Virus record (IMG/VR): IMGVR_UViG_3300032287_003113
Location: 124,001-188,000 of that record
Direction: 5' to 3' (one strand)
Length of the DNA: 64,000 nt
The notes beneath the pieces were generated by a model that was given only the letters and a program-made list of their open reading frames with translations, did no database searches and was not told the origin of the DNA. Positions 2,515 through 52,238 of this stretch are shown here, piece after piece (position 1 is the first letter of the stretch; the number at the start of each line of letters is the position of its first letter). A program made the position numbers and the translations under genes.

Positions 2515-2535
2515 CAGACCATATTATTCCGTACG

Positions 2536-2542: not shown

Positions 2543-2562
2543 CTTGATACGGATAAAATAAC

Positions 2563-27093: not shown

Positions 27094-27408
27094 ATGTCAG
27101 ATATCAATCAACTTGTCGAGCAAGTGCGTCTTGCTACAGATTATCAAATCAACAAACAAATCTTACGTGAAAAGATCCTAACAGATCTGCATGTTGCCCA
27201 TAACGGCGGATTATTTTTTATCACCACAGATCTAATTGGCTTTCTAACCACATGGCCTGACGACACAGTCTACCTTGAAGACACATATCATAATCCTGTT
27301 GAAGTCGACAGAATTGAATTGTTGACTTTGTGTAGAGAACACTATCAAAAAGTAATGAACCGTTGGCATCAAGAACACAATGAACTCAAACAGATCAGAA
27401 AAATCTAG
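27094..27408 (+). CDS. hypothetical protein, first gene of the tailoring cluster
   Basis: 104-aa ORF directly after the promoter; overlaps the next gene. Confidence 0.65.
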   Translation: MSDINQLVEQVRLATDYQINKQILREKILTDLHVAHNGGLFFITTDLIGFLTTWPDDTVYLEDTYHNPVEVDRIELLTLCREHYQKVMNRWHQEHNELKQIRKI

Positions 27409-28165
27409 AGGCATTGTTGCGTTTGCTATCAACACAGCAACCACAGACTATGTGAGTATTGCCAATCAAACAATCAACTTGGCCTCTTGTGTATTAGATT
27501 TACCTTATACCGTCATCACCCAAGATCATATGGCTGATATGAATTGGCACAACTATAGACATGATGTAGATCTTGGCCACGAAGTTGAATGGAAAAATTT
27601 TGGTCGCAATCTCTGTTATGAACTAAGTCCGTACGAAGAAACCCTGGTCATTGACGTGGACTATGTGGTACAAGATGCTGGACTATTAAAAATATTTGAT
27701 TTGCCGTGGGACTACTTGTTACAACGATCAGCCAGAAGTTTAAATGATGAATATGTACCCAACGTTATGGGTGCTCACAGTTTACCTTATGTATGGGCCA
27801 CGGTGTTTGCATTTAGAAAAACTACCCGTGCCAAAGCATTTTTTGACCTAGTGCAACGAATTGAAGCCAACTACCACTACTACAGAGAATTGTTTAATGC
27901 GGAAAGTAGAAGTTACAGAAATGATTATGCATTTGCTATGGCCGATGTAATACTAAATGGATTCACTGTTTCCAACATCAGTATACCTGGACCCATGCTG
28001 AACATACTACAACCAATTGAATCAATAGAGTCTCAGGGCAATCGAGTAGTTATCAAAGACAAGCAAACTGCTTATGTGGTTCCAAGAATGAACATGCATG
28101 TGATGAGTAAACAATATTTACAAAGCGACAATTTTACCAAGTTTATTAACGATGCCACAACATAA
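27380..28165 (+). CDS. GT-A fold glycosyltransferase (GT8-like)
   Basis: 'RGIVAFAIN....DY...A', 'LSPYEETLVIDVDYVV' (DxD), 'RNDYAF', C-terminal 'MHVMSK'. Confidence 0.65.
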   Translation: MNSNRSEKSRGIVAFAINTATTDYVSIANQTINLASCVLDLPYTVITQDHMADMNWHNYRHDVDLGHEVEWKNFGRNLCYELSPYEETLVIDVDYVVQDAGLLKIFDLPWDYLLQRSARSLNDEYVPNVMGAHSLPYVWATVFAFRKTTRAKAFFDLVQRIEANYHYYRELFNAESRSYRNDYAFAMADVILNGFTVSNISIPGPMLNILQPIESIESQGNRVVIKDKQTAYVVPRMNMHVMSKQYLQSDNFTKFINDATT

Positions 28166-29003
28166 AGAACCGCAGGGCTTTGTAACCTTTGCACAAAACA
28201 CACAGGATACAGACTATCTTGAGCTGGCCTACGTACAGGCATTAAATATTAAAGCAACACAAAAAGATAACAAATATGCAGTTATCGTTGATGTTGCTAC
28301 CCGGGAGAAAGTAAATGAACGTCATCATCGTGTTTTTGATTATATTATTGATCTTCCCTACGATAATAATGATCCTGCCAGTGCTAGGAAGTTTGCTAAC
28401 GAATGGCAAGTGTTTCGTCTCACGCCATTTAAAGAAACTATCAAGTTAGAATCGGACTTGTTGTTTACACGCACGATTGATCATTGGTGGACAGCATTTA
28501 GGTTAAAGAACGTTTGTCTAAGTACAGGCTGTAAAAATTATCAGGGAATTAACAGCACCATTCGAAAATATAGAGAACTGTTTGATGCAAACCATTTGCC
28601 TGATGTATATAATGGCCTGATGTATTTTAGATTTAGTTTAGAAGCCAAACAATTCTTTGAAGCCGCACAATATATACAAATGAATTGGAAGTATGTAAGG
28701 GCAGGACTTAAACAATGTGTAGAAGAAGAACCCAGCACAGACGTAATGTACGCACTGGCCGCCATCATGGTCGGACAGGAAACTTGTACAATGCCCAGCA
28801 TGGATTTCTTAAATTTCGTACACCTAAAACCCGCAATCAATGGTGTGGAAGAAACTGTACCGGTAACTGATCAAATGGTCACAGAATTTGATCGTGGTAT
28901 GATTCGTATTAACAATGTAAATCAACTACAGCCTGTACATTATTTTGAAAAAGATTTTGTTACAACAGAAATGAAGGAGTGGTATGAGTCCAGAATTTCT
29001 TGA
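28152..29003 (+). CDS. GT-A fold glycosyltransferase (GT8-like paralogue)
   Basis: 'QGFVTFAQN....DYLELAY', 'LTPFKETIKLESDLLF', 'PDVYNGLMYF', 'PVHYFEK'; paralogous to the preceding gene. Confidence 0.6.
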   Translation: MPQHKEPQGFVTFAQNTQDTDYLELAYVQALNIKATQKDNKYAVIVDVATREKVNERHHRVFDYIIDLPYDNNDPASARKFANEWQVFRLTPFKETIKLESDLLFTRTIDHWWTAFRLKNVCLSTGCKNYQGINSTIRKYRELFDANHLPDVYNGLMYFRFSLEAKQFFEAAQYIQMNWKYVRAGLKQCVEEEPSTDVMYALAAIMVGQETCTMPSMDFLNFVHLKPAINGVEETVPVTDQMVTEFDRGMIRINNVNQLQPVHYFEKDFVTTEMKEWYESRIS

Positions 29004-29352
29004 AGCATTACGGTTGGTTGAAGAGTACGATCGTCAACGTCCCAAATTAATTACAGAGTTTAGAATATACTATGATGAAGAAGGTCGAGTTACCATGTAC
29101 TGCGAGACTGATCATCCTGCTGATACCAATTACATTGTGATAGACAATCCTGATGTGTTTTTTAAAACCAATACCGGTAGGTTGCGTGTAATCGATGGAG
29201 AATTAAAGATTATCGACACACGACCAACACGAACACATCTTGCAAAAAGCACTACAGGACAACCAGTAGTACGAGGCATGGCTGCACTGGCATTAACGCC
29301 CACAGAACAATATCAAGACATAGAATATTATGACAGAACGACACTTAATTGA
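28984..29352 (+). CDS. hypothetical protein
   Basis: 122-aa ORF overlapping both neighbours. Confidence 0.6.
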   Translation: MSPEFLEALRLVEEYDRQRPKLITEFRIYYDEEGRVTMYCETDHPADTNYIVIDNPDVFFKTNTGRLRVIDGELKIIDTRPTRTHLAKSTTGQPVVRGMAALALTPTEQYQDIEYYDRTTLN

Positions 29353-30229
29353 TGTAGCAGACTTAGACTGCATTTATTTAACATATGATGAACCAAACAA
29401 AGAACAGAATTGGATTCGGATCCAAAACATGGTTCCTTGGGCCAAACGAGTGGACGGAGTCAAAGGCAGTGACGCCGCTCACAAAGCGGCTGCAGACGCC
29501 AGCGATACCGATCGCTTTATTCTCATTGATGGTGACAACGTTCCAGATCCTGAATTTTTCAATTTACAACTGGCCCTTGATGCTACCAATGACTCTTGCG
29601 TTTTTCGTTGGCGGGCTCGCAATGCCGTTAACGGTCTAATGTACGGTAACGGCGGCATGAGTTCTTGGACTCGAGAGTTTATCTATGCCATGCGTACACA
29701 CGAAGCAACTGATGGCTCTGCAGAGAATGATGTAGAATTTTGTTTTTATCCCAACTACTGGGCCATGAATGATTGCTACTCAACTACATACCCCAATGCA
29801 ACACCTTATCAAGCATGGAGAGCCGGATTCCGTGAAGGAGTAAAGATGGCTCTAGATCGTGGTGCGAAAATAACAGTGGCAGAATTTGAAAGCCGAGTTA
29901 ATACCCGTAACTATGATAACTTGTGTGTTTGGCAAAGTGTGGGTGCAGATGCAGATAACGGATTCTGGGCTATTTACGGCGCCAGACTTGGCACATATAT
30001 GATCATGTTAGAAGGTTGGAACCATAAGCAAGTACAAGATTTTGACACACTTGCCATGTTATGGAAGTCATTTGAGCAAGATGGACCAGATCAATGCCGC
30101 GGAGTTGGTGACGCATTACGTACACGTTTAGGTTTGCCTATTGTGGACATGGATCCTGAAGAAAGCCGATTCTTCAAACATCATTATAAATCAATGTTTA
30201 AAAATCAAGGTCCCATGGTCAGAGAATGA
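29330..30229 (+). CDS. GT-A fold glycosyltransferase
   Basis: 'DCIYLTYDEPN...KRVDGVKGSDAAHKAAA...FILIDGDN' (DxD), 'NGLMYGNGG', 'AWRAGFREGVK'. Confidence 0.65.
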   Translation: MTERHLIDVADLDCIYLTYDEPNKEQNWIRIQNMVPWAKRVDGVKGSDAAHKAAADASDTDRFILIDGDNVPDPEFFNLQLALDATNDSCVFRWRARNAVNGLMYGNGGMSSWTREFIYAMRTHEATDGSAENDVEFCFYPNYWAMNDCYSTTYPNATPYQAWRAGFREGVKMALDRGAKITVAEFESRVNTRNYDNLCVWQSVGADADNGFWAIYGARLGTYMIMLEGWNHKQVQDFDTLAMLWKSFEQDGPDQCRGVGDALRTRLGLPIVDMDPEESRFFKHHYKSMFKNQGPMVRE

Positions 30230-30945
30230 ATATCTTAGTCAATGGAACTTCTATCAGTCGCGGCGAAAATTCGTGGCCATATTTTTTACAATCGCAGATG
30301 AATTGTTCTTTGATTAATCTAGCTCAGGCTGGTAGTGGCAACACGTACATACATGAAGCAACAGTAGCAGAACTCAGCGAAAGATCCTACAACCTCGTGT
30401 TAATACAATGGACATACGCAGATCGTTTTGATTTCAGAGTTAAAGATATCAGCAAGTTCGGCGACACAACATATACAACCAACTTTCAATCCCGGCAGAA
30501 CGATTGGCCTAGCAAACAAATACATCCTGTAAATGATCAAGACTACGTACAACCGGATTGGATATTTGGATGTGGGTATCTAAACGAACGCCAGGATAAC
30601 AGCCTTGGCAGGGTATTTAAACCTTTATACCAGCACGTTGGAGCAAATGAACATGTATTTTCAACTTTAATAAAAATTATATCATTGCAAAGCACACTCA
30701 AGGCCTTGGGTATTCCTTACTTGTTTACAGAATACCGCCCAATGACTCGACTAAGTCGATTCGATCAGCTTTACAAATTAATTGATTGGAATAACTTTTA
30801 TTCAGGCAAACATTTATTTACTATTGCCAAAGAACATGATGCACTGGATGATACTTTACACCCATCCACGGAATGTCAGCAACTATATGCCGTTGACTTA
30901 CATAACGATTTAGTTAAACGGGGATATATCAATGCAAGATCTTAG
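30226..30945 (+). CDS. SGNH/GDSL-fold protein (acyltransferase or esterase)
   Basis: Block I 'NGTSISRG', 'NLAQAGSGN', block V 'DDTLHP'. Confidence 0.55.
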   Translation: MNILVNGTSISRGENSWPYFLQSQMNCSLINLAQAGSGNTYIHEATVAELSERSYNLVLIQWTYADRFDFRVKDISKFGDTTYTTNFQSRQNDWPSKQIHPVNDQDYVQPDWIFGCGYLNERQDNSLGRVFKPLYQHVGANEHVFSTLIKIISLQSTLKALGIPYLFTEYRPMTRLSRFDQLYKLIDWNNFYSGKHLFTIAKEHDALDDTLHPSTECQQLYAVDLHNDLVKRGYINARS

Positions 30946-31924
30946 CCCAAACAATCCAGCAGGTTGTCAAGATCGATTCATCTTTGATTTGAACGACAAC
31001 AGAATCTGGAACATCAACGGGTTTATTAAATTTTTAGTTGATAATCAAGGTCGAGTCATTGACATAGAGATACCCGAGGGTGTGGCGTTAGACAGCATAG
31101 GCATTTACGATTTGTTAGATTTGTTCTCATTTAAATCGGTCACTATACGCAGTTTTAATCTAGTGCAACAATCACATCCTGTATACAAATTAAATTTTCA
31201 TCCGTTGGCATTTAAATACTTTATTGTATCTCCTAATACAGATTACAGCCAATATCATGGTTGGTCTGGAAAATATATGTTTGGGGCATTTTATAATAGA
31301 CCAACTTGGTCACGAATTGGCCTAGCCGCATATTTACACACCAATCACAGTGACAAGACTCTGTTGAATTTCCGTTACGACCCTGACAATACAGACATTA
31401 GAAACACATTTGAACTAGACCAACTATTTCAAATTGACCCTAAATCCTTGGAATATTTTGGTCATCTAATACCTGCGTTGCCATTACGAGTGGAGCCCGT
31501 GGATGGGTACACCATCGGAGTCAGCACCAAAGAGCATACTGACCAACTTAGTGAATTTTATACTGACTTCTTAATTGACATTGTAAGCGAAACATTTGTA
31601 CGTGGCAGATGTTTTTATCCTACAGAAAAAACTGTTAGACCCATGCTGATGAAAAAGCCTTTTATACATATGGGACCCAAATGTTTTTTAATACATTTAC
31701 GTCAAATGGGATTTCGAACGTTTGGTGATTTTTGGTCCGAGGACTATGATGGATACGGTATGGATCAGCGGTATAAGTATATACTCAAATTAATTGACAC
31801 GCTGGCAGCCAAGTCCAAACAAGAACTACAAGACATGTATGCCCGTATGCAACCAATTTTAGAGCACAATTATCAATTGTTACTGACAAAACAATTTACA
31901 CGAGAAATTACCTATGTTGAATAG
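30932..31924 (+). CDS. putative GT-B glycosyltransferase (GT10-like C-terminal motif)
   Basis: 'IDIVSETF...FYPTEKTVRP...KPFI.MG...LR.MGFRTF.D.W.E.YD'. Confidence 0.45.
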   Translation: MQDLSPNNPAGCQDRFIFDLNDNRIWNINGFIKFLVDNQGRVIDIEIPEGVALDSIGIYDLLDLFSFKSVTIRSFNLVQQSHPVYKLNFHPLAFKYFIVSPNTDYSQYHGWSGKYMFGAFYNRPTWSRIGLAAYLHTNHSDKTLLNFRYDPDNTDIRNTFELDQLFQIDPKSLEYFGHLIPALPLRVEPVDGYTIGVSTKEHTDQLSEFYTDFLIDIVSETFVRGRCFYPTEKTVRPMLMKKPFIHMGPKCFLIHLRQMGFRTFGDFWSEDYDGYGMDQRYKYILKLIDTLAAKSKQELQDMYARMQPILEHNYQLLLTKQFTREITYVE

Positions 31925-32960
31925 CGAATACCATGTTGGTATCAACGACAACAAGTTTTGGCGTAAAGACTTGTTAGTTATGCACCTGTACGATTGCTTA
32001 AACACCAACCAACAGCCAGCCCTGCGGGTAACTCCAGAAGGTTCAAGCCTTGCAGGCTGTGGTTTATATAGGTACTTGGATGCGTTTTGCAAACATACTG
32101 GATACGATAAAAAGAACATTAGCATACGCACAGGCAACATGATCGAACAACACCCTGAGTACACAATTATAAAAGATGCCACCGCTTGGTTCGAAGTTCC
32201 TATTATGCAACAATGGGCACAAAAAAATCCGATCAACACAGGCACCATGCCTAGATTACACTTTGGACACTTTGTTGGAAAAAGCAATTGGAATAGATTG
32301 TGGATTGGTGCTGTGTTGCACAGTAAATACAATGATAAGTTATTTCAAACATATAACACCGGCATTGGTACACACTATCTTACTAAGAATGACGGCCTTT
32401 GTGATTTTGTGGGCTTAGAAGATCTGGTCAAAATGGAATGTGATCAAATTGATGTGGCTGTCGAATTTTTAAAGTCTTGTCCAAAGTTTATACCTGAGGA
32501 CATAGAAGCAATTAAAAATATGTCAACTTACATCAAACAAGACGATTACTACCCTATACAATTACCAGCCAATCTTAACATATTGAAATACTATAACAAT
32601 ATATTTGTGGACATTATCCATGAAACATTTGTTCGTGATGAAGTATGTTTTGCTACAGAAAAAACTTGGAGAACAATGTTAGCACGTAGGCCTTTTATTA
32701 CCATGGGAGGCAGAAATCATTTGGCTAATTTAAAGCGTCTAGGATTCCGTACATTCAATGACATCTGGGATGAAGGTTACGACGAGTATGGTATGCAGTG
32801 GCGTGTTAAAGAAATACTAAAACTAATAGATACTATCAGTTCTTGGTCAGTGGAAAAGATACAACAGGTCTTACAAGATATGCAACCTATACTAGAACAC
32901 AACTATCAAACTTTTATGACACTAACACATCAAAAAATACAGCGAACATTCAATGACTAA
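31914..32960 (+). CDS. putative GT-B glycosyltransferase (paralogue of 30932)
   Basis: 'VDIIHETF...FATEKTWR...RPFITMG...LGFRTFNDIWDEGYD'. Confidence 0.45.
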   Translation: MLNSEYHVGINDNKFWRKDLLVMHLYDCLNTNQQPALRVTPEGSSLAGCGLYRYLDAFCKHTGYDKKNISIRTGNMIEQHPEYTIIKDATAWFEVPIMQQWAQKNPINTGTMPRLHFGHFVGKSNWNRLWIGAVLHSKYNDKLFQTYNTGIGTHYLTKNDGLCDFVGLEDLVKMECDQIDVAVEFLKSCPKFIPEDIEAIKNMSTYIKQDDYYPIQLPANLNILKYYNNIFVDIIHETFVRDEVCFATEKTWRTMLARRPFITMGGRNHLANLKRLGFRTFNDIWDEGYDEYGMQWRVKEILKLIDTISSWSVEKIQQVLQDMQPILEHNYQTFMTLTHQKIQRTFND

Positions 32961-33789
32961 ATTCCATTTACCTTTTGTAGAAATGATGGTTACACAATTT
33001 TGTAATCTAAGCTGTGTTGGCTGTAGTAACTATGCTGACCTAAAACACACAGGTTATGTTCCTTGGGCAGATGGTCGGCGTGAAATAGAATCGTGGCTAC
33101 CACGCATGACAATTGAAGACTTTGGTATCATGGGTGGCGAGCCCCTGATCAATCCCGAACTTAAACAATGGATACGTGGCTTGCGTGAGTTATTACCCAC
33201 AAGCCCCATACGCTTTAGCACCAATGGCGAATTGCTAGATCGACATTTAGATGTGCTAGAAACAGCACACGAAGTGGGCAACTTTGTTTTTAAGATCACT
33301 GTACACCAACACAGCGAGCGTGTAGAACGTGTCATTGCTAAAATCTTCTCAATGTACAAGTGGGAACCTGTGTACGAATATGGCATCTATCGTTACAAAA
33401 CCACAAACGGATTAAGATTTCAGGTCAATCGTCCGCTGACATTTATCAAGTATTATAAGAATGATTACGCCAACATGATGCCGTTCAATTCCAATCCTGT
33501 GGATAGTTTCAATATTTGTATGCAACAACGATGTCCACTCATGTTCAATGGACGTATGTACAAGTGTAGTACACTAGGCGGATTGGAACAAACACTAGAT
33601 CGTTTTAGTAACACCGACCCTGCATGGGAGCCATACAAAGGCAAATACATTACACCTACGAGCCCAGATGCAGATATTGCGGCGTTCTTAAACAATTATG
33701 GTCGTCCACATCAAGTGTGTACAATGTGTCCTACCGCCCAGGATGACGAAAGTGTTATTTTACATTATAATAACGTAATAACAAAATGA
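32953..33789 (+). CDS. radical SAM enzyme with C-terminal Cys-rich (SPASM/twitch-like) region
   Basis: CNLSCVGC, GGEP, C-terminal 'CMQQRCP...YKC...CTMC'. Confidence 0.85.
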   Translation: MTKFHLPFVEMMVTQFCNLSCVGCSNYADLKHTGYVPWADGRREIESWLPRMTIEDFGIMGGEPLINPELKQWIRGLRELLPTSPIRFSTNGELLDRHLDVLETAHEVGNFVFKITVHQHSERVERVIAKIFSMYKWEPVYEYGIYRYKTTNGLRFQVNRPLTFIKYYKNDYANMMPFNSNPVDSFNICMQQRCPLMFNGRMYKCSTLGGLEQTLDRFSNTDPAWEPYKGKYITPTSPDADIAAFLNNYGRPHQVCTMCPTAQDDESVILHYNNVITK

Positions 33790-34667
33790 CAAGATTCTTT
33801 GCCTTCGGGTGCTCCTTTACTAACTCTAAAAATCCTACTTGGGCTGACATAGTGGCGCACGAGTACAACCATTACCAAAACTGGGGACAGGCTGGTGCAG
33901 GTAATAGTTTTATATTCTACAGTCTAATGGAATGTAACAAGCGTAATCAGATTACTCCGGACGATGTAGTAATGATCATGTGGAGCAGCATTGGTAGAGA
34001 AGATCGTTATGTTGGAGGAGAATGGTTGACTCCTGGTAGTATATACAATCAACAAGATTATGATGAGAACTTTGTAAAGAAGTTTACAGATCCAACAGGA
34101 TACTTGTTACGAGATGCAGCACACTTGGCTGGTGCTAAAGCCATATTAGATAATATTGGGTGTCGGTATTATTTTTTTAGTATTGTTCCGTTTAATGTTC
34201 CAGACGATAACGTTTTTAAAATCTTTAGCATAGATAATAAAATATTAAATGTTTATGCTGAAGAATTTCGATCTGTGCGTCCCAGTGTATACGAAGTTGT
34301 CTTTGATCACGACTGGTACAGCCGGGCCGGCATTAAACAAGAAGACAAGCTCAAAGAAGAATACGAAATTAAACGTGGTAATGATTGGCCCACATGGGAT
34401 AAGTTTATAATACAAGACTTCGGCGGTGTACCCAAAGATATTAAAGATGAAATAAACAACCAACACGAGTTTACCAACAGATATTTGCGTAGGTATGACA
34501 CACATCCAACTCCAGCAGAATATTTAGAATATATCACACGAGTAGCACCAGACATAGAAGTATCCTCTGCCACACAAGATTGGGTAGCAACAGTGACTGA
34601 TAGATTAATCAAACACCAAGACTTAACCAAACTTTGGAAACCTAATAAAAAGCCTGCGAGATTCTAA
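33786..34667 (+). CDS. SGNH/GDSL-fold protein
   Basis: 'FAFGCSFT', 'NWGQAGAGN', 'YDTHPTP'. Confidence 0.55.
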   Translation: MTRFFAFGCSFTNSKNPTWADIVAHEYNHYQNWGQAGAGNSFIFYSLMECNKRNQITPDDVVMIMWSSIGREDRYVGGEWLTPGSIYNQQDYDENFVKKFTDPTGYLLRDAAHLAGAKAILDNIGCRYYFFSIVPFNVPDDNVFKIFSIDNKILNVYAEEFRSVRPSVYEVVFDHDWYSRAGIKQEDKLKEEYEIKRGNDWPTWDKFIIQDFGGVPKDIKDEINNQHEFTNRYLRRYDTHPTPAEYLEYITRVAPDIEVSSATQDWVATVTDRLIKHQDLTKLWKPNKKPARF

Positions 34668-43067: not shown

Positions 43068-43134
43068 ACTAGAATTACGCTATCGCAAGAAGTTAAAAGA
43101 GCTTCGTAAACGAGATCCATTTATCTATAAATGA
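43033..43134 (+). CDS. 33-aa basic peptide ending in DPFIYK (below the ORF-track cutoff)
   Basis: AAGGA RBS at 43021-43025; MNWLRNIYNRIKLELRYRKKLKELRKRDPFIYK; stop overlaps the next ATG (ATGA). Confidence 0.6.
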   Translation: MNWLRNIYNRIKLELRYRKKLKELRKRDPFIYK

Positions 43135-45847: not shown

Positions 45848-46380
45848 AAATTACAGAAAACTTTTATCAACTCATTGACGTATTTAACCCCAATTTATAT
45901 CAACATTTAGCAAACGCTTTTAACCAAGATCGGTCCGCCTGGGCACAAATAAGTGACGAGAGCACAGATGTAAAACGTCAACAGCTAAGTTTATCTGTTA
46001 ACGATTACCTTGGACAACAGATCAATGAAGAATTAAGAAAATATGTTAGAACAGCCGAGCCACGTGTTGGACCACTGTATCAAAACGGTCCACAACTATG
46101 GTATGACAACAACGGTTATATCAACACCATACATGATGGTGATGTCAGTCCCAATCATTGTGTTAACGTACAAGTGTATCTCAGTGATGGAGATGAACGT
46201 ATGGGAACCTGTTGCTATGACGAAGGCGAATGGCACAGCGTACCGTATCGAGCCAACTCAGGATACATGCTGATAGGTCCTACTCGTATACCGCATGGTA
46301 TGCAACATCCAGTAACCAATCACAGAATGAGTTTATATCAGGGATTTAGAAACACCGAAGTACCGTCAGATATTTGGTAA
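45838..46380 (+). CDS. 2OG-Fe(II) oxygenase
   Basis: HxD 'IHDGD', distal 'PHGM' and 'R.SLY'; 'NVQVYL' strand. Confidence 0.65.
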   Translation: MLVKITENFYQLIDVFNPNLYQHLANAFNQDRSAWAQISDESTDVKRQQLSLSVNDYLGQQINEELRKYVRTAEPRVGPLYQNGPQLWYDNNGYINTIHDGDVSPNHCVNVQVYLSDGDERMGTCCYDEGEWHSVPYRANSGYMLIGPTRIPHGMQHPVTNHRMSLYQGFRNTEVPSDIW

Positions 46381-46391
46381 AGGAAAACAAA

Positions 46392-47231
46392 ATGACACAA
46401 CGTATTTTAATTATGGGCCTGCCGGGTGCAGGTAAAACAACCTTGGCTGGTGCTCTTAAAAAGTATTTGGAACAGTACGGAACAATGAGTATGTATTCTG
46501 CTGAACAACTTCCAGTAACCGGGTTTGATGCTAAGGTAACTTGGTTTAATGCTGACGATATTCGTCGTAAGTACAACGACTGGGATTTTAGCAATGAAGG
46601 ACGCATCCGCCAAAGCCTACGTATGTTTCAGTTTAGTATAGAAGCCGGTGGAGAATATGTGATCTGTGACTTTGTTGCACCGCTAGTAGAAATGCGTAAC
46701 AACTTCAAAGCTGATTGGACCATTTGGGTAGATACTATACGTGAAGGTCGTTATGCTGACACCAATGCGGCCTTTGTTGAGCCTGACGTGTATGACTTCC
46801 GTGTCACAGAACAAAACGCAGAAAAATGGGCTGAGTTTATTGGATCGCATATTATTGATAATCGCCGCAGGCCCACGTTTGATTGGCGGAAAGAAACTGT
46901 ACAAATGTTAGGACGTTGGCAACCTTGGCACGATGGACACCGTGCTTTGTTTGAGCGTCTAATACAACGCACAGGACAAGTAGTCATACAAATACGTGAC
47001 GTACAAGGTTGGCAAGGATCAAATCCATTTGAAGTAGAAAAGGTTAAAGGCTTTATTCGTCGCGACCTAGATCCAATCTATCAAGGACAATATGAAATAC
47101 AAGTGGTACCTAATATTGTACACATTGGTTGGGGTCGTGGAGTAGGATATACCAGTGGTGAAGAAACATTTGATGAAGCTGTCACAGACATCAGTGCCAC
47201 AAAGATTCGTCGAGAACTAGGACTCAAGTGA
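46392..47231 (+). CDS. APS-kinase-like P-loop kinase fused to an HxGH nucleotidyltransferase
   Basis: 'GLPGAGKTT', 'NADDIR...DFSNEGR', 'CDFVAP'; C-terminal 'GRWQPWHDGH'; AAGGA RBS before ATG 46392. Confidence 0.75.
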   Translation: MTQRILIMGLPGAGKTTLAGALKKYLEQYGTMSMYSAEQLPVTGFDAKVTWFNADDIRRKYNDWDFSNEGRIRQSLRMFQFSIEAGGEYVICDFVAPLVEMRNNFKADWTIWVDTIREGRYADTNAAFVEPDVYDFRVTEQNAEKWAEFIGSHIIDNRRRPTFDWRKETVQMLGRWQPWHDGHRALFERLIQRTGQVVIQIRDVQGWQGSNPFEVEKVKGFIRRDLDPIYQGQYEIQVVPNIVHIGWGRGVGYTSGEETFDEAVTDISATKIRRELGLK

Positions 47232-48395
47232 GATAGGTATAGGCAAGCCAGTTCTGACATCTAGGCGATATGGGGGTATGCGTTGAAACGCACGATCTAT
47301 CGCTGTAATAGACCGAATCAAATGATCCCATTCACGCTTGATAAACGCCGGATCATTAAATAATTGATAGTTGTGTTCTAAGACGGGTTGCATGTCTAGC
47401 AACATGGTCATTTGTTGTTCTGTGCTTAATTCGCTAACAGTTTTTATTACTTGAGCAATAGCTTCAATACGTATTACAGGATCTTCTATTGCATCGTAAC
47501 TTTCATCCCAGTAGTCACCAAATGTACGAAAGCCATAACTACGCAAATACTCTAAGTTATGGGCACAACCAGCAAGTACGAATGGCATACGAAGTACAAT
47601 AGGTTTAAATATCTTTTCTGTCAAGTGTGTTTTTGTTTGAAAGAAACAGGTTTCCGTTACCAAGAATACAAAACTTTTCATCAACTCAGTCATAGGACTT
47701 AACAACATACTTTGATTGGGAATGTTTTGTCCAGCAAAATCTATACGCAACTCTGGTATCTGTTTTATGTTAGCAATGGCCTCGTTGATGTATGCTGGAT
47801 CAAATTCATATTCGGGAACACCTCGGCGTAGGTTATCATCAAACGCACCGTCGTCGGGGCAATGGTGACTGTAACTTACATATCCTGAATCAAGCAAATT
47901 GTTTTTGTATAATTCGTTTACCAACAGGCTACGATAGATACGACGGTTACTGGTCAGTCGATTAAAAGATATATAAGTTTTTTCTAAGGTACGTTCGTGT
48001 GGTAGTTGTAAACCAGGAAGCATTTGGTGTCCTCGGAACCAATCGTGGGCAGCAAAAATATGAAAGAAGTAATTGATATGCAGGAATGGAAATTCTTCAC
48101 AGATGCGTTTGGCTTCGTCACTGTCACGTTCAGTGGATACAAGAATAAATGGTTTTTGCTCAAGACCGGTGATGGCTTCAAACACAGGACGATTGTAATC
48201 TAAATCCAACGGCTCTTGATCATAAAAGATAAACAATGGCCCGCGAAATTTACCTGCATCTTCGTCATTGCGTCGAAATTCAAGATTTTCTGGTAGAGTT
48301 GATCCAAAAGGATGTAGGTAAACTACCCTGGGATCTGTTATAATAGTTTGTAGGTGTTGGAATATATTTTCGTAATGACTGGATAAGTTATACAT
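47217..48395 (-). CDS. putative GT-B glycosyltransferase (third member of the TEK-motif family)
   Basis: 'FLVTETCF...HLTEKIFKPIV..MPFVLAG...LRSYGFRTFGDYWDESYD'. Confidence 0.5.
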   Translation of the reverse strand: MYNLSSHYENIFQHLQTIITDPRVVYLHPFGSTLPENLEFRRNDEDAGKFRGPLFIFYDQEPLDLDYNRPVFEAITGLEQKPFILVSTERDSDEAKRICEEFPFLHINYFFHIFAAHDWFRGHQMLPGLQLPHERTLEKTYISFNRLTSNRRIYRSLLVNELYKNNLLDSGYVSYSHHCPDDGAFDDNLRRGVPEYEFDPAYINEAIANIKQIPELRIDFAGQNIPNQSMLLSPMTELMKSFVFLVTETCFFQTKTHLTEKIFKPIVLRMPFVLAGCAHNLEYLRSYGFRTFGDYWDESYDAIEDPVIRIEAIAQVIKTVSELSTEQQMTMLLDMQPVLEHNYQLFNDPAFIKREWDHLIRSITAIDRAFQRIPPYRLDVRTGLPIPISLES

Positions 48396-50226
48396 GTTTG
48401 ATGTTTTTTACTTTGGCGATAAACCGGGCTTGTTTGCTTTTGAACAACCTGCGACTAGTCTCAAAGATGCCGCTGATAAATGTAAGACTACACACTACTG
48501 GTATATTTATGGGGGCAATGATTACACCGGCTTCGACTTTGAATACGTACCGGTACCTTGGGAAACCACGCACTTGCATGTATGGCCTAGCCAGCATCAA
48601 CGCAATGGCGAAGTGTATCTAGCCAATCGACGTACAGCACACAATCAAGAATGGCACTTCCATACAGAACAGAGTGTTGTCCGTAAGCCCGATCGCGGCA
48701 TATGGCGTGTACCCGACAACATAGACGACACAGACTTTGATTATTCATGGCATCCTGATCGTACCGAACCTGACTACGAATATCGATTTCCCACACAGTG
48801 GCAACGTGAAGGTGGTCCTGTGTATCCAGGCTCAGCCGGCGTCAAGTACATGACTGACCAACGCATACGTGCAGGCGCCACACAAATATTCTACATGGAC
48901 TTTATGAATGGTGGTATAGCACGTCATCAATTTGATTTGTTAAAATTAGATCACCCTGATATCAAGCGAACAAGATATGTGGACAACCACCTCAACGTGT
49001 TCAAGCGTATTATGAACATGGCCACCACAGAATACGTATGGATCATCAGTAGCATCTGCGACTATACGCAATTTGATTTTACCTGGCACCCCAGCGAAGC
49101 ACAGCGTGAAATGATCCACTGCTTTCCCACAGGCAACCAACGACGTGGCGACACATTTTACATACACGTTCCCAGTTTCACTCGGCAGATGTTTGAGTTA
49201 GAGCTGTTGGATTGGTTCAATGTTATCAACTACTCAGATGATCAACAGGTAGAACGTTTTGGTATGCCGGTACACCAATACTCAACCGACGATCTAGTAA
49301 CCGAAATCAAAAACTACAAGTTCGAAACTCCCTATGTGATGTTCACTAATCAAAAGGACCTGGTGTTACATGATAGCCCTTGTTTATGGACCAAGAAAGA
49401 CCGTACAGTGGTTCGTATTAGCACAGCAGGTGCTACTGCGATAGTGCCTCGAGATATCAAGGAGGATTTACGCACACAAATCTACGATTATCCTTACATT
49501 GAGGACACGAAACCCAGGTTAAACGACTACTTAGGAGGCCGTGATTGTCTCGACATAGTCTATATCAGCAACGGTGAACCGGACGAAGAACGTTGGTATG
49601 ATCATCTGTGCTATATGAGCAATACCCGAGCAAAATGGGTTAGAGGAGTTGATGGTAGAACAGCCGCTTATCAAGAAGCTGCACGTCAAAGTTCTACACC
49701 CTGGTTTTTTGCTGTGTTTGCCAAATTAGAAGTGTTGGGCAATCAGTTTCCTTGGGACTCCTGGTTACCAGACTACTTCCAAGAGCCCAAACATTATATT
49801 TTTAATAGTCGTAATCCTGTAAACGGCTTAGAGTATGGGCACCAAGGTGTCATTGCTTACAACAAGCGATTGGTGTTAGAGAATAACGCACCTGGCATAG
49901 ACTTTACACTAAGCCAACCACACGAAAGTGTTCCTATCCTGTCAGGTACAGCACACTACAATCAAAGTGAGTGGATGACTTGGCGTACCGCTTTCCGTGA
50001 AGTGGTCAAACTACGACACTTTATGGACATACAACCTACTGTGGAAACAGAACATAGACTCGCGACATGGTTGACGGTTGCCGAAGGTGATTTTGCTGAG
50101 TGGAGTATACGTGGCGCAGAAGATGCTGTGGCTTACTATACAGAAGTTGGCGGAGACTACGAACAGTTAAAACTCAGCTTTGAATGGGCTTGGCTAAGAG
50201 AACGATTTAATTCAAGTAAGCCGTAA
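48394..50226 (+). CDS. multidomain glycosyltransferase (repeated degenerate GT-A modules)
   Basis: Repeats 'FDFEYVP', 'FDYSWHP', 'FDFTWHP'; C-terminal domain 'DIVYISNGEP...VRGVDGR..AY..AA...NGLEYGHQG...WRTAFREVVK' paralogous to 29330. Confidence 0.6.
   Translation: MFDVFYFGDKPGLFAFEQPATSLKDAADKCKTTHYWYIYGGNDYTGFDFEYVPVPWETTHLHVWPSQHQRNGEVYLANRRTAHNQEWHFHTEQSVVRKPDRGIWRVPDNIDDTDFDYSWHPDRTEPDYEYRFPTQWQREGGPVYPGSAGVKYMTDQRIRAGATQIFYMDFMNGGIARHQFDLLKLDHPDIKRTRYVDNHLNVFKRIMNMATTEYVWIISSICDYTQFDFTWHPSEAQREMIHCFPTGNQRRGDTFYIHVPSFTRQMFELELLDWFNVINYSDDQQVERFGMPVHQYSTDDLVTEIKNYKFETPYVMFTNQKDLVLHDSPCLWTKKDRTVVRISTAGATAIVPRDIKEDLRTQIYDYPYIEDTKPRLNDYLGGRDCLDIVYISNGEPDEERWYDHLCYMSNTRAKWVRGVDGRTAAYQEAARQSSTPWFFAVFAKLEVLGNQFPWDSWLPDYFQEPKHYIFNSRNPVNGLEYGHQGVIAYNKRLVLENNAPGIDFTLSQPHESVPILSGTAHYNQSEWMTWRTAFREVVKLRHFMDIQPTVETEHRLATWLTVAEGDFAEWSIRGAEDAVAYYTEVGGDYEQLKLSFEWAWLRERFNSSKP
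48504..48510 (-). promoter_or_regulatory. possible late promoter ATAAATA for the inverted GT gene
   Basis: TATTTAT on + strand, about 110 nt upstream of the minus-strand ATG at 48395, inside the divergent CDS. Confidence 0.3.
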
Positions 50227-51316
50227 TACTATCAATTACAAGTTCTACTTCGGTGTCTGTCATTTCGGGATAGATAGGTAAACTCAATGCTTCTTTGCTG
50301 TGTGCTGTACTACCACGCATGATATCTCTAGCATAATCCACATAATCCCAACCCACTGGATGTTCAAATAAAGGTTGTTCGTAGTGTATTTTAGTTTCAA
50401 TGCCTTTGCTGGCCAACATGCCTTGCATGGCACTACGTGATCCTGTGCGAATAACAAACTTGTGCCAAGCGTGTTCTACATCCGGATTGGGCAATAGTAC
50501 ATCCACCCAGTCAGTTAAGTTTTCTATATACAAGTCGGCTATTTCTTGTCTACGTCGTTGCCATGAGTCAAAGTACTTTAACTTGACCAACATTTGAGCA
50601 CAGTCAGCATCACTCATCTTGCTGTTGGTACCGGCATGGTCGTGATTCAATACCTTGCCATTGTCTCTGAGAGCCAGAGCAAATTGATAGATGTCGTAAT
50701 CGTCTGTGAGTATCATGCCGCCTGAACCATAGTTGTTTAGATTCTTTGTGGGATCAAAACTCAGTACGCTGACATCGCCTAATTTGCCTGATGGGATACC
50801 GTTATAGCTAGCACCAAAACTTTGTGCGGCGTCTTCGATAATCTTGACATCTTCGTTGAAGAATTTGGTAACATTTAATAGTCGATCGTAGTCTAATACA
50901 TTACCAAACATGTTGACATACATGACAGTATCTACATGTCCATCTAGGGCATAATCAATAGTTTCTATATCTAATAGAGCATTGTGATCTACATCGCAGT
51001 ACACAGGTTCGTTACCGGCCATTAGCACAGAGTTAAGTGTGGCAACAAAACTAATGCCAGGAATCATGATCTTTTCTATGCCTTTACTGCGAGCGGTGGC
51101 CAACTGAGCAAAGACCAAGGCCTGTGTTCCGGAGTTAACTGCCACACTATACTGACGCATACAACGTGCAGCCATTTGGCGTTCAAACATCTGTGTGTAA
51201 GGACCATCTAGCACTTGCCCCGTACGATATGCACGGTCACTGGCATCAAGAATCTCGTCTCGGAGCAGTTGGTATTGACGAGCTACGCCATTAAACGGTA
51301 CGTCGTAGCCACTCAT
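50207..51316 (-). CDS. DegT/DnrJ/EryC1/StrS PLP-dependent sugar aminotransferase
   Basis: 'VNSGTQAL', 'IIEDAAQSFGA', catalytic Lys in 'SFDPTKNL..YGSGG', 'LSLPIYPEM'; start likely MSGYDVPF (51316), alternative 51340. Confidence 0.9.
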   Translation of the reverse strand: MSGYDVPFNGVARQYQLLRDEILDASDRAYRTGQVLDGPYTQMFERQMAARCMRQYSVAVNSGTQALVFAQLATARSKGIEKIMIPGISFVATLNSVLMAGNEPVYCDVDHNALLDIETIDYALDGHVDTVMYVNMFGNVLDYDRLLNVTKFFNEDVKIIEDAAQSFGASYNGIPSGKLGDVSVLSFDPTKNLNNYGSGGMILTDDYDIYQFALALRDNGKVLNHDHAGTNSKMSDADCAQMLVKLKYFDSWQRRRQEIADLYIENLTDWVDVLLPNPDVEHAWHKFVIRTGSRSAMQGMLASKGIETKIHYEQPLFEHPVGWDYVDYARDIMRGSTAHSKEALSLPIYPEMTDTEVELVIDSITAYLN

Positions 51317-52238
51317 AATATGCTTGAAAACCTTGTTCAATATCTACTCGTCCACGATAGCCAAAGTCTTGGCCGGCACGTATGGTGCTTAGTGTGCCAC
51401 GACTGGGAAATCTGGGATTGGCATCGGCCATCCTAATACGACCCTTGCCTGCAATCGCGACAGCCAATTCAGCGGCTTCTAATAGAGTACGTCCACGACT
51501 GCGTGTAATGTTGTATGTACGTTTGGAACTGTTAAAACTAAGTGAGGCCTTGACAATACCATCGACAGCATCATCAACATAGGTAAAGTCTAACTGTTCT
51601 TCTGCACCACATACCACAAGTTCTTGATCTAGCATGGCATTGGTTAAAAACTTGCTGACTACACGGTCTTCGACATCTCGTGGTCCATACACCGCACTTG
51701 GACGTAACACGACATAATCAATTCCGGCCCGTTCACATAGATCACGTGTTAGGCTTTCTCCGGCATATTTTAAAATACCATAGATACCTTTTGGATTACA
51801 ACGCATATCTTCGTAGCCGCACAGCTCAAAGTCTCCGTAGACCATGCTAGAACTGATGTAAACAAATCTACGAACATCGAAGCGTTCGCTACAGCGTAAT
51901 AAGTTAATCAATCCATTGGTCAATACTGTGGCACCTTCTTCGGGATTCTCATCCACAGCTTTGGCACGGGGAAATGCTGCACAATGTATCACAACATCAG
52001 GTCTGCACTCATCAAACACATTTAACAAAGCATTATAGTTTTTAATATCTACATGATGTATGCTGGTTGTAGCGATACGTTCCAAACGTTCTTGATGTAG
52101 TTTGGACATTTCGGCATCAGGCACAATACCGTAATTGGTAAAGTTATCTAGGATGCAAACATCGTGACCTTGTGCTTCAAGTTCAGCTACCACATTGTGC
52201 CCAATAAAGCCCACACCGCCAGTGACTAATATATTCAT
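51291..52238 (-). CDS. NAD-dependent NDP-sugar epimerase/dehydratase
   Basis: 'ILVTGGVGFIG', 'YISSSMVYG', YxxxK 'YGILK', 'LRPSAVYGP'. Confidence 0.9.
   Translation of the reverse strand: MNILVTGGVGFIGHNVVAELEAQGHDVCILDNFTNYGIVPDAEMSKLHQERLERIATTSIHHVDIKNYNALLNVFDECRPDVVIHCAAFPRAKAVDENPEEGATVLTNGLINLLRCSERFDVRRFVYISSSMVYGDFELCGYEDMRCNPKGIYGILKYAGESLTRDLCERAGIDYVVLRPSAVYGPRDVEDRVVSKFLTNAMLDQELVVCGAEEQLDFTYVDDAVDGIVKASLSFNSSKRTYNITRSRGRTLLEAAELAVAIAGKGRIRMADANPRFPSRGTLSTIRAGQDFGYRGRVDIEQGFQAYYEWLRRTV

Follow-up and report, generated by a model that had tools for sequence, protein, structure and literature searches.

The question raised by this locus is what a jumbo phage makes with a long row of sugar-related and radical enzyme genes placed directly after its tail-fibre genes, and where the product goes. 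The analyzed window is a stretch of 64,000 nucleotides, positions 124,001 to 188,000 of the IMG/VR virus record IMGVR_UViG_3300032287_003113, and the block lies at positions 27094–52238 of the window. A preliminary description had reported about 27 tightly overlapping genes for soluble glycan enzymes at these positions, and had proposed that they glycosylate and decorate the virion. Our analysis confirmed the observation, with 26 open reading frames (ORFs) instead of about 27. The proposed interpretation was supported only in part.

The ORFs were numbered g1 to g26 as listed in Table 1. Of these, 22 are on the + strand, and g23, g25 and g26 are on the - strand. Every junction overlaps by 1–50 bp, except for a 63-bp gap between g17 and g18 and a 78-bp gap before g1. 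All the ORFs are conserved in related loci, and so they are real genes. Hydropathy was calculated for each ORF. The maximum 19-residue Kyte–Doolittle mean stays below 1.5 for every ORF, except for one window of 1.66 in the DegT enzyme, which belongs to a soluble family. No ORF has a convincing transmembrane segment.

Table 1. Positions of the genes in the window and their assignments (variable: gene varies among related loci).
Positions	Strand	Gene	Assignment
26020..27015	+	g0	Ser/Thr/Gly-rich fibre-like protein just upstream of the block; candidate acceptor (context)
27094..27408	+	g1	Small conserved protein of unknown function (possibly a fibre chaperone)
27380..28165	+	g2	GT8-like putative GT-A glycosyltransferase
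28152..29003	+	g3	Paralogue of g2 with ExD in place of DxD
28984..29352	+	g4	Small protein of unknown function
29330..30229	+	g5	Highly conserved GT-A-like protein (D67-G-D69)
30226..30945	+	g6	SGNH/DUF6071-like protein (variable)
30932..31924	+	g7	GT-B, fucosyltransferase-like (variable)
31914..32960	+	g8	GT-B, fucosyltransferase-like (variable)
32953..33789	+	g9	Small radical SAM (variable)
33786..34667	+	g10	Divergent SGNH-like protein, N-terminal FGCS (variable)
34667..41217 (34667-36049, 36036-37385, 37382-38713, 38700-39917, 39910-41217)	+	g11-g15	Five paralogous N-terminal-twitch radical SAM enzymes
41201..42286	+	g16	Conserved protein of unknown fold; partner of the radical SAM array
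42264..44400 (42264-43067, 43131-43775, 43750-44400)	+	g17, g18, g19	Three SGNH/DUF6071-like proteins
44366..45847	+	g20	NodU/CmcH/TobZ-type carbamoyltransferase
45838..46380	+	g21	Small putative 2OG-Fe(II) oxygenase (variable)
46374..47231	+	g22	P-loop kinase fused to an HxGH nucleotidyltransferase
47217..48395	-	g23	GT-B-like protein, C-terminal half homologous to g7 and g8
48394..50226	+	g24	610-aa protein; N-terminal part of unknown function, C-terminal g5-like GT-A-like domain lacking DxD
50207..51340	-	g25	DegT/DnrJ/EryC1 sugar aminotransferase
51291..52238	-	g26	GalE-like SDR NDP-sugar epimerase
52235..53146	-	thyA	Canonical thymidylate synthase (right flank, not part of the system)

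Several families were assigned with confidence by profile searches. All six radical SAM proteins carry CxxxCxxC. The five proteins g11–g15 hit NCBIfam NF033640 (N-terminal twitch) at 288–398 bits against a cut-off of 170, and four N-terminal Cys residues plus CxxxCxxC are invariant across these paralogues. The sixth, g9, hits Radical_SAM at 1e-13, with CxxxCxxC at residue 17. g20 hits Carbam_trans_N (1e-38 to 1e-37) and Carbam_trans_C (3e-48). g25 hits DegT (PF01041) at 1e-77; its best NCBIfam model is PseC-like at 172 bits, below the cut-off of that model. g26 hits Epimerase (PF01370) at 2e-46. g22 hits phrog_10255 at 2.6e-42, shows APS-kinase-like and NMNAT-like hits, and contains the P-loop motif GLPGAGKTT and the nucleotidyltransferase motifs GRWQPWHDGH and ISATKIR. 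DUF6071 was hit by g6 (1.7e-5), g18 (1.2e-7) and g19 (8.4e-5), and g17 and g18 have a GDS motif at residues 6–7. In contrast, g1 and g4 gave no family hit, and g16 gave no Pfam, PHROG or PDB hit.

The paralogue counts in the preliminary description (2 GT8-like, 2 GT-A, 3 GT10-like, 6 radical SAM and 5 SGNH proteins) were reproduced by profile comparison, with the GT10-like group taken here as GT-B/fucosyltransferase-like. Local hhalign on alignments of orthologues gave 99.5% for g2 and g3, 99.6% for g5 and residues 383–579 of g24, 99.9–100% for g7, g8 and g23 (100% for g7 and g8, 99.9% for g23), and at least 99.7% for g6, g17, g18 and g19. g10 joins the last group at 95–97%, and g9 joins the radical SAM proteins at 96–97%.

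The glycosyltransferase (GT) labels rest on motifs and fold only. No GT model of Pfam or PHROG reaches threshold for any GT-like ORF. The labels are based on DxD, TEK and H..K motifs, on Foldseek lists made up almost entirely of GT-A or GT-B enzymes, and on sub-threshold hits. Against the PDB, the Foldseek hits have E of at least 0.011 and TM of at most 0.34. For g2 and g3 the label is inferred from sequence alone. In g2, D92xD94, H240 and K244 are invariant, the glycogenin-1 hit is in register but at E=1.7, the DxD of WaaJ aligns at E=0.16, and 1 of 22 orthologues hits PF01501 at E=0.01. In g3, E100, D102, H263 and K267 are invariant. The g5 protein shows 59–83% identity across the clade with 120 invariant columns, and has more than 8000 metagenomic relatives, none with a Pfam domain. 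Its AF2 model has a pLDDT of 76.6, and the top Foldseek hits are all GT2 or nucleotidyltransferase GT-A folds, but E is at least 0.013. PF00535 covers the DxD region of g5 at E=0.08. g24 gave no PDB sequence hit. The g7 protein shares the motif E..(F)xTEKxxRP..PFIVxGP. The AF2 model of g8 has a pLDDT of 87.5 and a pTM of 0.88. Its Foldseek list from the PDB consists of GT-B enzymes, including H. pylori alpha1,3-FucT at 2.5e-2, and the BFVD hits include an RfaG GT (2.8e-4), a Solivirus alpha1,3-FucT (1.3e-3) and a relative fused to a UDP-glucose dehydrogenase domain (1.6e-9). No GT10 Pfam hit was obtained among 31 members of this family. The 2OG oxygenase label for g21 is also sub-threshold (PF03171, E=0.024), with an HxD...H motif.

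The related loci in IMG/VR were compared next. The scans matched at least 600 stretches with g12 and 575 with g20, of which the best 80 each were examined. The backbone g1–g5, g11–g16, g20 and g24–g26 is syntenic in the related loci examined. g1 is conserved in 66 of 80 loci and g4 is present in 46 of 80. In most related loci each of g11–g15 has its own orthologue at a median identity of 53–73%, and 25 of 42 complete loci carry exactly five of these enzymes. The g5-g11-g12-g13-g14-g15-g16-g20 backbone carries 0–5 GT-B-like and 0–5 SGNH-like insertions, resulting in 29 architectures in 42 loci. The constant core with variable GT and SGNH genes resembles a diversifying glycan pathway. The right arm g20-g23-g24-DegT-SDR is conserved in 31–46 of 46 loci: g24 is present in 46, g25 in 36 and g26 in 31, and 43 ORFs of the g23 family were found, often two per locus and absent from a few. 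g21 and g22 are accessory, present in 3 and 21 of the 46 loci, respectively. The g16 family comprises 684 clusters in the 50% representative library, and one member is fused to a g13-type radical SAM.

Bacterial relatives of the N-twitch radical SAM enzymes sit in carbohydrate or glycolipid contexts. In Bdellovibrionota, five are arranged in tandem with two GT2 and two SGNH-like genes. In Saprospiraceae, they occur with GT2, a g25-like DegT, a g26-like SDR (2e-67), two PhyH genes and UbiA, and in a spirochaete and a Paenibacillus with GT2 and ACP. These contexts and the g8-like domain fused to UDP-glucose dehydrogenase are independent comparative evidence for a carbohydrate-directed function. 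However, the contexts that include ACP, KAS and UbiA point to lipid-linked or small-molecule products rather than protein glycans.

Several features lean towards a virion acceptor, although they do not show it. The block follows g0 and three fibre paralogues on the same strand with overlapping genes. The S+T content of g0 is 27%, like that of the three fibre paralogues, and g0 precedes g1 in almost all related loci. The distant cultured Ralstonia phage RsoM2USA keeps the order giant protein...SDR...fibre-g1-g2-g3-x-g5-rSAM-g5', next to ORFs 356, 359 and 361, which were found in virions by mass spectrometry. In this phage, the counterpart of g0 is ORF355, which carries the fibre N-terminal domain, and the counterpart of g1 is ORF354. 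A near-identical relative is 100% identical over 30.5–44.5 kb but only 78–93% identical over about 25.0–30.5 kb, which covers the 3' end of the last fibre gene, g0 and g1–g5. The breakpoint falls at the g5/g6 junction, and the fibre/g0–g5 block has recombined as a unit. A g16–radical SAM fusion is flanked by Laminin_G_3 fibre-like proteins. On the other hand, adjacency to fibre genes may simply reflect late-operon packing or hitch-hiking with a recombination hot spot. In RsoM2USA, the module of radical SAM, SGNH and carbamoyltransferase genes (ORF199, 46% identical to g20) lies 90 kb from the fibres, close to DHFR.

Other products were considered. A soluble or lipid-anchored secondary metabolite made during infection, such as an aminoglycoside-like pseudo-oligosaccharide, a glycolipid or a nucleoside derivative used for takeover, counter-defence or killing competitors, is the strongest of the alternatives but remains doubtful. 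The enzyme mix mirrors aminoglycoside-type pathways, in which a twitch radical SAM dehydrogenase works with a DegT transaminase (butirosin), and in which the carbamoyltransferase TobZ, GT-B glycosyltransferases, a 2OG oxygenase and a deacetylase occur. The bacterial loci with ACP, KS, KR, AMP-binding or UbiA genes and the separate module of RsoM2USA fit this reading, and the lack of membrane machinery fits it equally well. However, no scaffold-forming enzyme (2-deoxy-scyllo-inosose synthase type, PKS or NRPS), exporter or self-resistance gene was detected in the profile searches, the link to the fibre gene is old and conserved with co-recombination of the block, and the same-strand, overlapping continuation of the structural operon fits a late function. 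It is less likely that the radical SAM enzymes with g16 modify the fibre or another structural protein directly by RiPP-like chemistry (cross-links, epimerisation or C-methylation), with the sugar enzymes as an independent or secondary layer. SPASM/twitch enzymes are best known as peptide and protein maturases, and weak NCBIfam similarities to sactipeptide and ranthipeptide maturases were observed. The g16–radical SAM fusion that sits between Laminin_G_3 fibre-like genes, and the radical SAM gene directly after fibre-g1-g5 in RsoM2USA, agree with this view, and a phage contig with radical SAM genes and a g16 fusion also has an Asp/Asn beta-hydroxylase-type protein hydroxylase. However, no RRE domain, leader peptidase or precursor-like gene was seen, the cellular homologues sit with GT2, DegT, SDR and ACP genes and not with peptides, and the family has a single N-terminal auxiliary cluster rather than the C-terminal SPASM of known maturases.

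Remodelling of host envelope precursors (LPS, capsule or peptidoglycan sugars) in the cytoplasm, to block superinfection or to aid release, is also unlikely. Cyanophage and other T4-like genomes carry LPS-like gene clusters, Vibrio phage K566 has its radical SAM array near a PagP-annotated gene, and epimerase, DegT, carbamoyltransferase and SGNH enzymes are typical of O-antigen loci. However, the block encodes no initiating polyprenyl-phosphate transferase, flippase, polymerase or AT3 protein, a lytic jumbo phage gains little from late-expressed serotype conversion, and the fibre-linked synteny is not explained. Hypermodification of the phage DNA to evade restriction, for example by glycosylation and carbamoylation of hydroxymethyl-pyrimidines, is the least likely. 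A phage carbamoyltransferase with the same two Pfam domains carbamoylates 5hmC in DNA (PMC8670742), the T4 DNA alpha-glucosyltransferase is among the GT-B fold hits, the block abuts thyA and DHFR, and a 2OG oxygenase-like gene and a kinase are present. However, within the part of the roughly 350-kb genome examined, the adjacent ThyA is 44% identical to the E. coli enzyme and retains PPCH and PFNIASY, giving His147 and Asn177. This is the state of unmodified contigs, whereas modified contigs carry Asp177, and carbamoyltransferases on unmodified contigs sit next to glycosyltransferases (PMC8670742). DHFR beside ThyA indicates ordinary dTMP synthesis, g21 and g22 are accessory, and the genes run on from the fibre operon. 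The canonical ThyA argues against 5hmC-type DNA modification.

Our tentative explanation is that the block is a conserved, wholly cytoplasmic system for assembling and tailoring a glycan, coupled physically and evolutionarily to the tail-fibre genes of a large clade of uncultured aquatic jumbo myophages. The gene content, the family assignments, the conservation and the synteny are shown here, whereas every step of the following scheme, including the chemistry of the product, is inferred, and the acceptor is unproven. g26 and g25 would adapt host NDP-sugars into an amino sugar. The preliminary description stated that an epimerase plus DegT makes NDP-amino-deoxysugars, but this is not supported as written, because the keto-forming step is lacking here: g26 has the GalE-type motif SSSMVYG and YGILK, and not the TDE motif of a 4,6-dehydratase. 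One of the radical SAM enzymes may supply the keto intermediate, by analogy with the twitch-domain dehydrogenase BtrN acting before a DegT-type transaminase. g22 could equally be a NadR-like NAD salvage enzyme. The invariant GT-A-like proteins g2, g3 and g5 (and g24) would lay down a core on a soluble acceptor, most likely the Ser/Thr-rich fibre proteins encoded just upstream. The five N-twitch radical SAM enzymes, together with g16, would then carry out successive C–H chemistry such as oxidation, epimerisation, deoxygenation or C–C formation. g20 would O-carbamoylate a hydroxyl using carbamoyl phosphate and ATP, and the SGNH/DUF6071 proteins would add or remove O-acyl groups. In this view, the variable GT-B and SGNH genes would give each phage lineage its own decoration, and the block most likely builds an elaborate sugar decoration, probably for the virion, by a route not yet described.

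The window is part of an uncultured jumbo myophage (IMGVR_UViG_3300032287_003113, 100% identical over the cluster), and it is nearly identical to the 356,865-bp contig 3300027759_004177. T4-type baseplate genes, a giant ORF and three tail-fibre paralogues lie upstream of the cluster, and the thymidylate synthase gene thyA and DHFR lie downstream. According to the gp6-like wedge protein, the closest cultured relatives are PA5oct-, Atu_ph07- and Rak2-type jumbo phages, at ~36% identity. The different C-terminal domains of the fibre paralogues suggest a multi-fibre or branched adsorption apparatus. Between 27094 and 52238, 26 ORFs (g1-g26) were found. Within that span all junctions overlap except one 63-bp gap, and a 78-bp gap separates g1 from g0, the fibre-like gene just upstream. 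None of the ORFs has a transmembrane segment. Thus, the observation in the preliminary description, a block of soluble glycan and tailoring genes beside the tail-fibre genes, is confirmed. Further features of the window and of related loci are listed in the table.

Coordinates of features in the window and in related loci
Feature	Location	Strand	Description
Giant ORF	window 5739-18311	+	single 4190-aa ORF following the gp6-like baseplate wedge gene
Tail-fibre paralogues	window 18999-20576, 21968-23956, 23984-25978	+	share their first ~200 residues (36-43% identity); different C-terminal domains
Mosaic region	window 21900-55800		compared with IMGVR_UViG_3300027759_004177
g24	window 48394-50226		an 'FDFxWxP...W...H' segment recurs three times along the protein
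ORF between thyA and DHFR	window 53143-53928	-	261 aa; weak GDSL hit (E=0.004); does not match the SGNH-like family profiles built here; present in only 4 of 46 related loci
Bdellovibrionota locus	GCA_040384145.1, contig JAWVHD010000002.1, 1200646-1221854		chromosomal; eight radical SAM genes (five of them N-twitch, in tandem), two 550-aa GT2 enzymes and two SGNH-like proteins, next to rplU-rpmA-obg
g16-rSAM fusion	Logan SRR8931216 contig, 1284-3548		754-aa natural fusion of a g16-like domain with a g13-type N-twitch rSAM, flanked by three Laminin_G_3 proteins
Vibrio phage K566 array	OZ196521.1, 161548-168284		four distant N-twitch rSAM paralogues interleaved with unannotated 310-420-aa proteins, a few genes from a PagP-annotated gene and from NAD salvage genes

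HMM libraries gave firm assignments for six radical SAM enzymes (rSAMs), the carbamoyltransferase, the DegT aminotransferase and the SDR epimerase. Alignments of orthologues were built from ~160 related loci and all of them were compared by hhalign. The resulting groups are g2 and g3; g5 and the C-terminus of g24; g7, g8 and g23; g6, g10, g17, g18 and g19; and g9 plus g11-g15. They reproduce exactly the counts of GT8-like, GT-A, GT10-like, SGNH and radical SAM proteins in the preliminary description. In contrast to these groups, the glycosyltransferase (GT) labels are weak. Pfam and PHROG scans of all unknown ORFs, also performed at E<=10 and member by member on the orthologues, gave no GT family at threshold. 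phmmer and profile searches against PDB sequences gave nothing significant, using g8, g13 and g3 as single sequences, and g5, g16, the g7/g8 family, g2 and g24 as profiles. What supports the GT labels is motif and predicted fold.

In the case of g2 and g3, which are GT8-like by motif, the window proteins give no hit to PF01501, and 1 of 22 g2 orthologues hits it at E=0.01. The alignments of g2 to glycogenin (E=1.7) and, by hhalign, to E. coli WaaJ (E=0.16) are in register but not significant, and the g2 and g3 profiles gave no significant match to WaaJ or WaaO. D92xD94, H240 and K244 of g2 are all invariant, and g3 has E100xD102, H263 and K267. The spacing between the DxD motif and the distal His...Lys motif matches that of LgtC and glycogenin. 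For g5, the PF00535 match is below threshold (E=0.082, 13.3 bits against a cut-off of 23.3) and is aligned over the DxD region. The motif D67-G-D69 is invariant. The AF2 model of g5 has a pLDDT of 76.6, and nearly all of its top 50 PDB hits are GT-A glycosyltransferases (GT2 and others) or sugar nucleotidyltransferases, but the best E is only 0.013 and TM is at most 0.31. No relation between g5 and g2 was detected by hhalign. The g5-like C-terminal domain of g24 has lost the DxD, and it may be a non-catalytic or differently catalytic GT-A derivative.

None of 31 members of the g7/g8/g23 family hits any GT Pfam, including GT10, at E<=1. On the other hand, the AF2 model of g8 is confident (pLDDT 87.5) and is predicted to have the GT-B fold. 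Its PDB neighbours are GT-B enzymes only, among which the H. pylori alpha1,3-fucosyltransferase 2nzw ranks second at 2.5e-2. Its BFVD neighbours include annotated fucosyltransferases and RfaG at 1e-3 to 3e-4, with a Solivirus alpha1,3-FucT at 1.3e-3 (prob 0.99), a Bodo saltans virus FucT C-terminal domain at 1.5e-2, and a relative fused to a UDP-glucose dehydrogenase domain. T248, E249, K250 and R253, in the C-terminal nucleotide-binding motif (E..YxTEK...PVVxG), are conserved. These results concern fold and motif, and not donor specificity.

The carbamoyltransferase g20 has both Carbam_trans_N and Carbam_trans_C above threshold (130.9 and 163.9 bits). It is not a NodU equivalog, as it scores 139 bits against a cut-off of 1000. 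Among the five mutually homologous SGNH/DUF6071-like proteins, only g18 passes the DUF6071 cut-off (32.0 against 27), whereas g6 scores 25.1 and g19 scores 22.8. GDS is present in g17 and g18, GCS in g10, and no clear motif was seen in g6 or g19. The putative 2OG-Fe(II) oxygenase g21 matches PF03171 at 15.4 bits against a cut-off of 23 (E=0.024), and H-D-G-D and a distal H are visible in its sequence. The SDR g26 has SSSMVYG of the GalE type and YGILK, not the T-D-E signature of an NDP-hexose 4,6-dehydratase, and its best NCBIfam scores are all below their cut-offs. The reading of g26 as a 4,6-dehydratase was therefore rejected, and it is regarded as epimerase-like. The keto substrate for DegT must therefore come from the host or from another enzyme. 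A twitch-type rSAM dehydrogenase is a reasonable candidate, inferred by analogy with BtrN. g22 has a P-loop and the HxGH and ISxTxIR nucleotidyltransferase motifs. It could activate a sugar or polyol phosphate, but it equally resembles NadR-type kinase/NMNAT enzymes, and it is accessory (21 of 46 loci).

The rSAMs g11-g15 all belong to NCBIfam NF033640, the twitch domain-containing radical SAM family (N_Twi_rSAM), at 288-398 bits against the curated cut-off of 170 (g11 306, g12 295, g13 398, g14 330 and g15 289). The Pfam SPASM hit lies N-terminal to the Radical_SAM hit, and seven Cys (C40, C59, C100, C103 and C154/C158/C161) are invariant across 10 paralogues, the last three forming the CxxxCxxC core and the others a SPASM/twitch-like Cys cluster N-terminal to it. 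In most related loci each of the five has its own orthologue, at a median 53-73% identity. These are five maintained functions, not recent duplicates.

The IMG/VR scans matched at least 600 stretches with g12 and 575 with g20, and the best 80 of each were examined. g5 has more than 8000 metagenomic relatives, none with a Pfam domain. The backbone g0-g1-g2-g3-(g4)-g5, g11-g12-g13-g14-g15-g16 and g20 is syntenic throughout. The right arm g20-(g22)-g23-g24-DegT-SDR-thyA-DHFR is also conserved; g24 is present in 46 of 46 loci, DegT in 36 and the SDR in 31. The accessory genes vary, with 0-5 GT-B-like genes, 0-5 SGNH-like genes, occasional extra rSAMs, and g9 (a small rSAM), g10 and g21. They are inserted at gene junctions and give 29 architectures in 42 complete loci. 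A constant core with swappable GT and esterase genes is the pattern of a diversifying glycan pathway. Megablast of the cluster against 50,697 phage records found no match.

In order to find cellular counterparts, one genome per species was scanned with g13 orthologues. Nine of the 20 'bacterial' hits were mis-binned phage contigs. Contigs carrying the full phage cluster are binned into MAGs labelled Polynucleobacter, Legionellales, Porticoccaceae, Flavobacterium, Verrucomicrobia, Rickettsiales and Haliscomenobacter, which is probably phage contamination of the bins and at best a weak hint about hosts. True bacterial loci were also returned. In the Bdellovibrionota locus, which may be the cellular counterpart of the phage island, the two SGNH-like proteins match our g18 profile. 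A Saprospiraceae locus has KAS III, GT2, a g25-like DegT, a g26-like SDR (2e-67), two PhyH dioxygenases, UbiA and three N-twitch rSAMs. A spirochaete has several rSAMs, ACP, a methyltransferase and GT2, and a Paenibacillus has an ACP/KS/KR/AMP-binding/GT2 set. None of these loci looks like a RiPP locus. The family therefore keeps company with sugar-nucleotide and glycosyl-transfer enzymes, sometimes with lipid-type carriers.

The conserved protein g16 has no detectable family (Pfam or PHROG) or PDB relative, and it has 684 clusters in the 50% representative library. Among the g16 fusion proteins, the Pfam search was informative only for P0250, a fusion of a g16-like domain with a g13-type rSAM that lies between Laminin_G_3 fibre-like genes. 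This ties g16 functionally to the rSAMs, and ties that module once more to fibres.

The plus-strand genes continue the fibre operon with overlapping reading frames. The only cultured phage in the collection with g5 is Ralstonia phage RsoM2USA. It carries ORF361 (giant protein), ORF358 (g26-like SDR) and ORF355 (g0-like fibre), in this order with other genes between, and then ORFs 354 (g1), 353 (g2), 352 (g3), 351, 350 (g5), 349 (g11-type rSAM) and 348 (g5-like), at 30-37% identity. ORFs 356, 359 and 361 were found in virions by mass spectrometry (PMC8504454). ORF361 (over 288 kDa) matches part of the giant ORF of the window, and a relative carries a 4790-aa version with a faint FG-GAP hit. A second module of RsoM2USA, SGNH-rSAM (51% identical to g12)-SGNH-SGNH-carbamoyltransferase (46%), lies ~90 kb away. 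The island is therefore built from at least two separable modules.

According to the comparison with the near-identical relative IMGVR_UViG_3300027759_004177, the identity is mosaic. It is 100% over 30.5-44.5 kb and 53.5-55.8 kb, but it drops to 74-95% in the second of the three fibre paralogues, 78-93% over ~25.0-30.5 kb, ~90% in g21, and 86-95% over DegT, the SDR and thyA. These are recent recombination tracts. The stretch of 25.0-30.5 kb covers the 3' end of the last fibre gene, g0 and g1-g5, and the breakpoint lies at the g5/g6 junction. The fibre and g1-g5 were exchanged together. Sigma-70 promoter and terminator scans were at chance level. The T4 late-promoter core TATAAATA is absent on both strands of the whole 64 kb, where 4.7 +/- 2.1 copies are expected by chance, and this phage presumably uses another late-promoter type. 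These scans thus gave no indication of transcription timing.

Several known systems resemble the island in part. In mycobacteriophage virion glycosylation (Freeman et al. 2023, cited in PMC12619734), phage-encoded soluble GTs lie next to structural genes, no membrane machinery is involved, and the acceptor is a cytoplasmic virion protein, which here is only inferred. Those systems use a few recognisable GTs, whereas 7 GT-like proteins recognised by no family model are present here, with 6 radical SAMs, 5 SGNH-like proteins, a carbamoyltransferase and amino-sugar enzymes. The giant-virus pathways (chlorovirus PBCV-1 capsid glycans, and mimivirus fibril viosamine/bacillosamine clusters) also have virus-encoded sugar-nucleotide tailoring enzymes (a DegT-type aminotransferase and SDR enzymes) and several soluble GTs, which there decorate surface fibres, and giant-virus fucosyltransferase-like proteins are fold neighbours of g8. 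Those are eukaryotic viruses in which no radical SAM array or carbamoyltransferase is known to have been reported, and the SDR here is epimerase-like, not a 4,6-dehydratase. The bacterial NF033640 members also occur in tandem arrays with GT2 and SGNH-like genes, or with DegT and SDR genes, and the phage version adds the g16 partner, the carbamoyltransferase and the link to the fibre genes. No function for this family was found in the literature searched, and searches for this cluster, for DUF6071 and for N-terminal twitch rSAMs in jumbo phages also found nothing. The 'moraphage' paper (PMC12619734) reports core GTs, with no rSAMs, in a different lineage of up to 307 kb that infects Bacteroidota, and no link between it and this clade was found.

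The interpretation as a phage-encoded system for virion glycosylation and decoration is partly supported. We consider a carbohydrate-directed pathway probable, whereas the full statement that the cluster glycosylates and tailors virion (fibre) proteins remains tentative. The gene content, the conservation and the adjacency to the fibre genes come directly from the analysis, whereas the attachment of glycans to virion proteins, the enzymatic activities and the source of the keto sugar are inferred. Among the other explanations, a soluble or lipid-linked metabolite is unlikely but ranks highest. Aminoglycoside clusters (butirosin, neomycin, tobramycin) likewise combine a twitch or SPASM rSAM, a DegT-type transaminase, GT-B enzymes, an O-carbamoyltransferase, a 2OG oxygenase and a deacetylase-type hydrolase. 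However, no cyclitol synthase, exporter or resistance gene was detected here, the cluster is in a phage and linked to fibre genes, and the resemblance lies in the enzyme classes only. Direct modification of fibre proteins by the rSAMs is less likely, followed by remodelling of the host envelope, and DNA hypermodification is the least likely. A two-domain carbamoyltransferase of the same Pfam families carbamoylates 5hmC in phage DNA (MetaGPA, PMC8670742). In that study, modified contigs pair it with a thymidylate-synthase homologue that has Asp at E. coli position 177 (a dCMP-directed hydroxymethylase), whereas unmodified contigs have Asn177 and often place the carbamoyltransferase beside glycosyltransferases. 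Here, g27 (ThyA) is 44% identical to E. coli ThyA, has PFNIASY (Asn177) and PPCH (His147), and sits next to DHFR, and the carbamoyltransferase sits among GT-like and SGNH-like genes. The reading of thyA as a hydroxymethylase was rejected. These features of the ThyA argue against that mechanism, although only 64 kb of a ~350-kb genome was seen.

A more far-reaching reading is not excluded, although it is unlikely on present evidence. In this view, a widespread clade of aquatic jumbo phages, plus RsoM2USA, decorates its tail fibres with a glycan whose core is rebuilt by five dedicated N-twitch radical SAM enzymes and the partner protein g16. Swappable GT-B and SGNH genes would then diversify the periphery into phage 'glycotypes', the viral counterpart of O-antigen serotypes, used for host recognition or to evade defences. 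This would be the first radical-SAM-dependent virion glycosylation pathway, and it would assign a function to the uncharacterised NF033640 family.

Virus-encoded glycosylation is known, whereas the radical-SAM/g16/carbamoyltransferase core is undescribed. Even if the acceptor turns out to be DNA or a small molecule, a conserved array of five rSAMs with a carbamoyltransferase and SGNH-like proteins in phages is undescribed chemistry. If the reading of virion decoration is right, tailed phages would be able to build complex, radical-SAM-tailored glycans entirely in the cytoplasm and attach them to host-recognition organelles. Virion glycosylation would then extend well beyond the few-GT systems of mycobacteriophages, towards the complexity seen in giant viruses. 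RsoM2USA would be a cultured model for this idea. The reading would explain a hypervariable yet backbone-conserved island in an abundant uncultured phage clade, and it would give a first functional context to several abundant families of unknown function, namely the g5 family, the g16 family, DUF6071 and NF033640.
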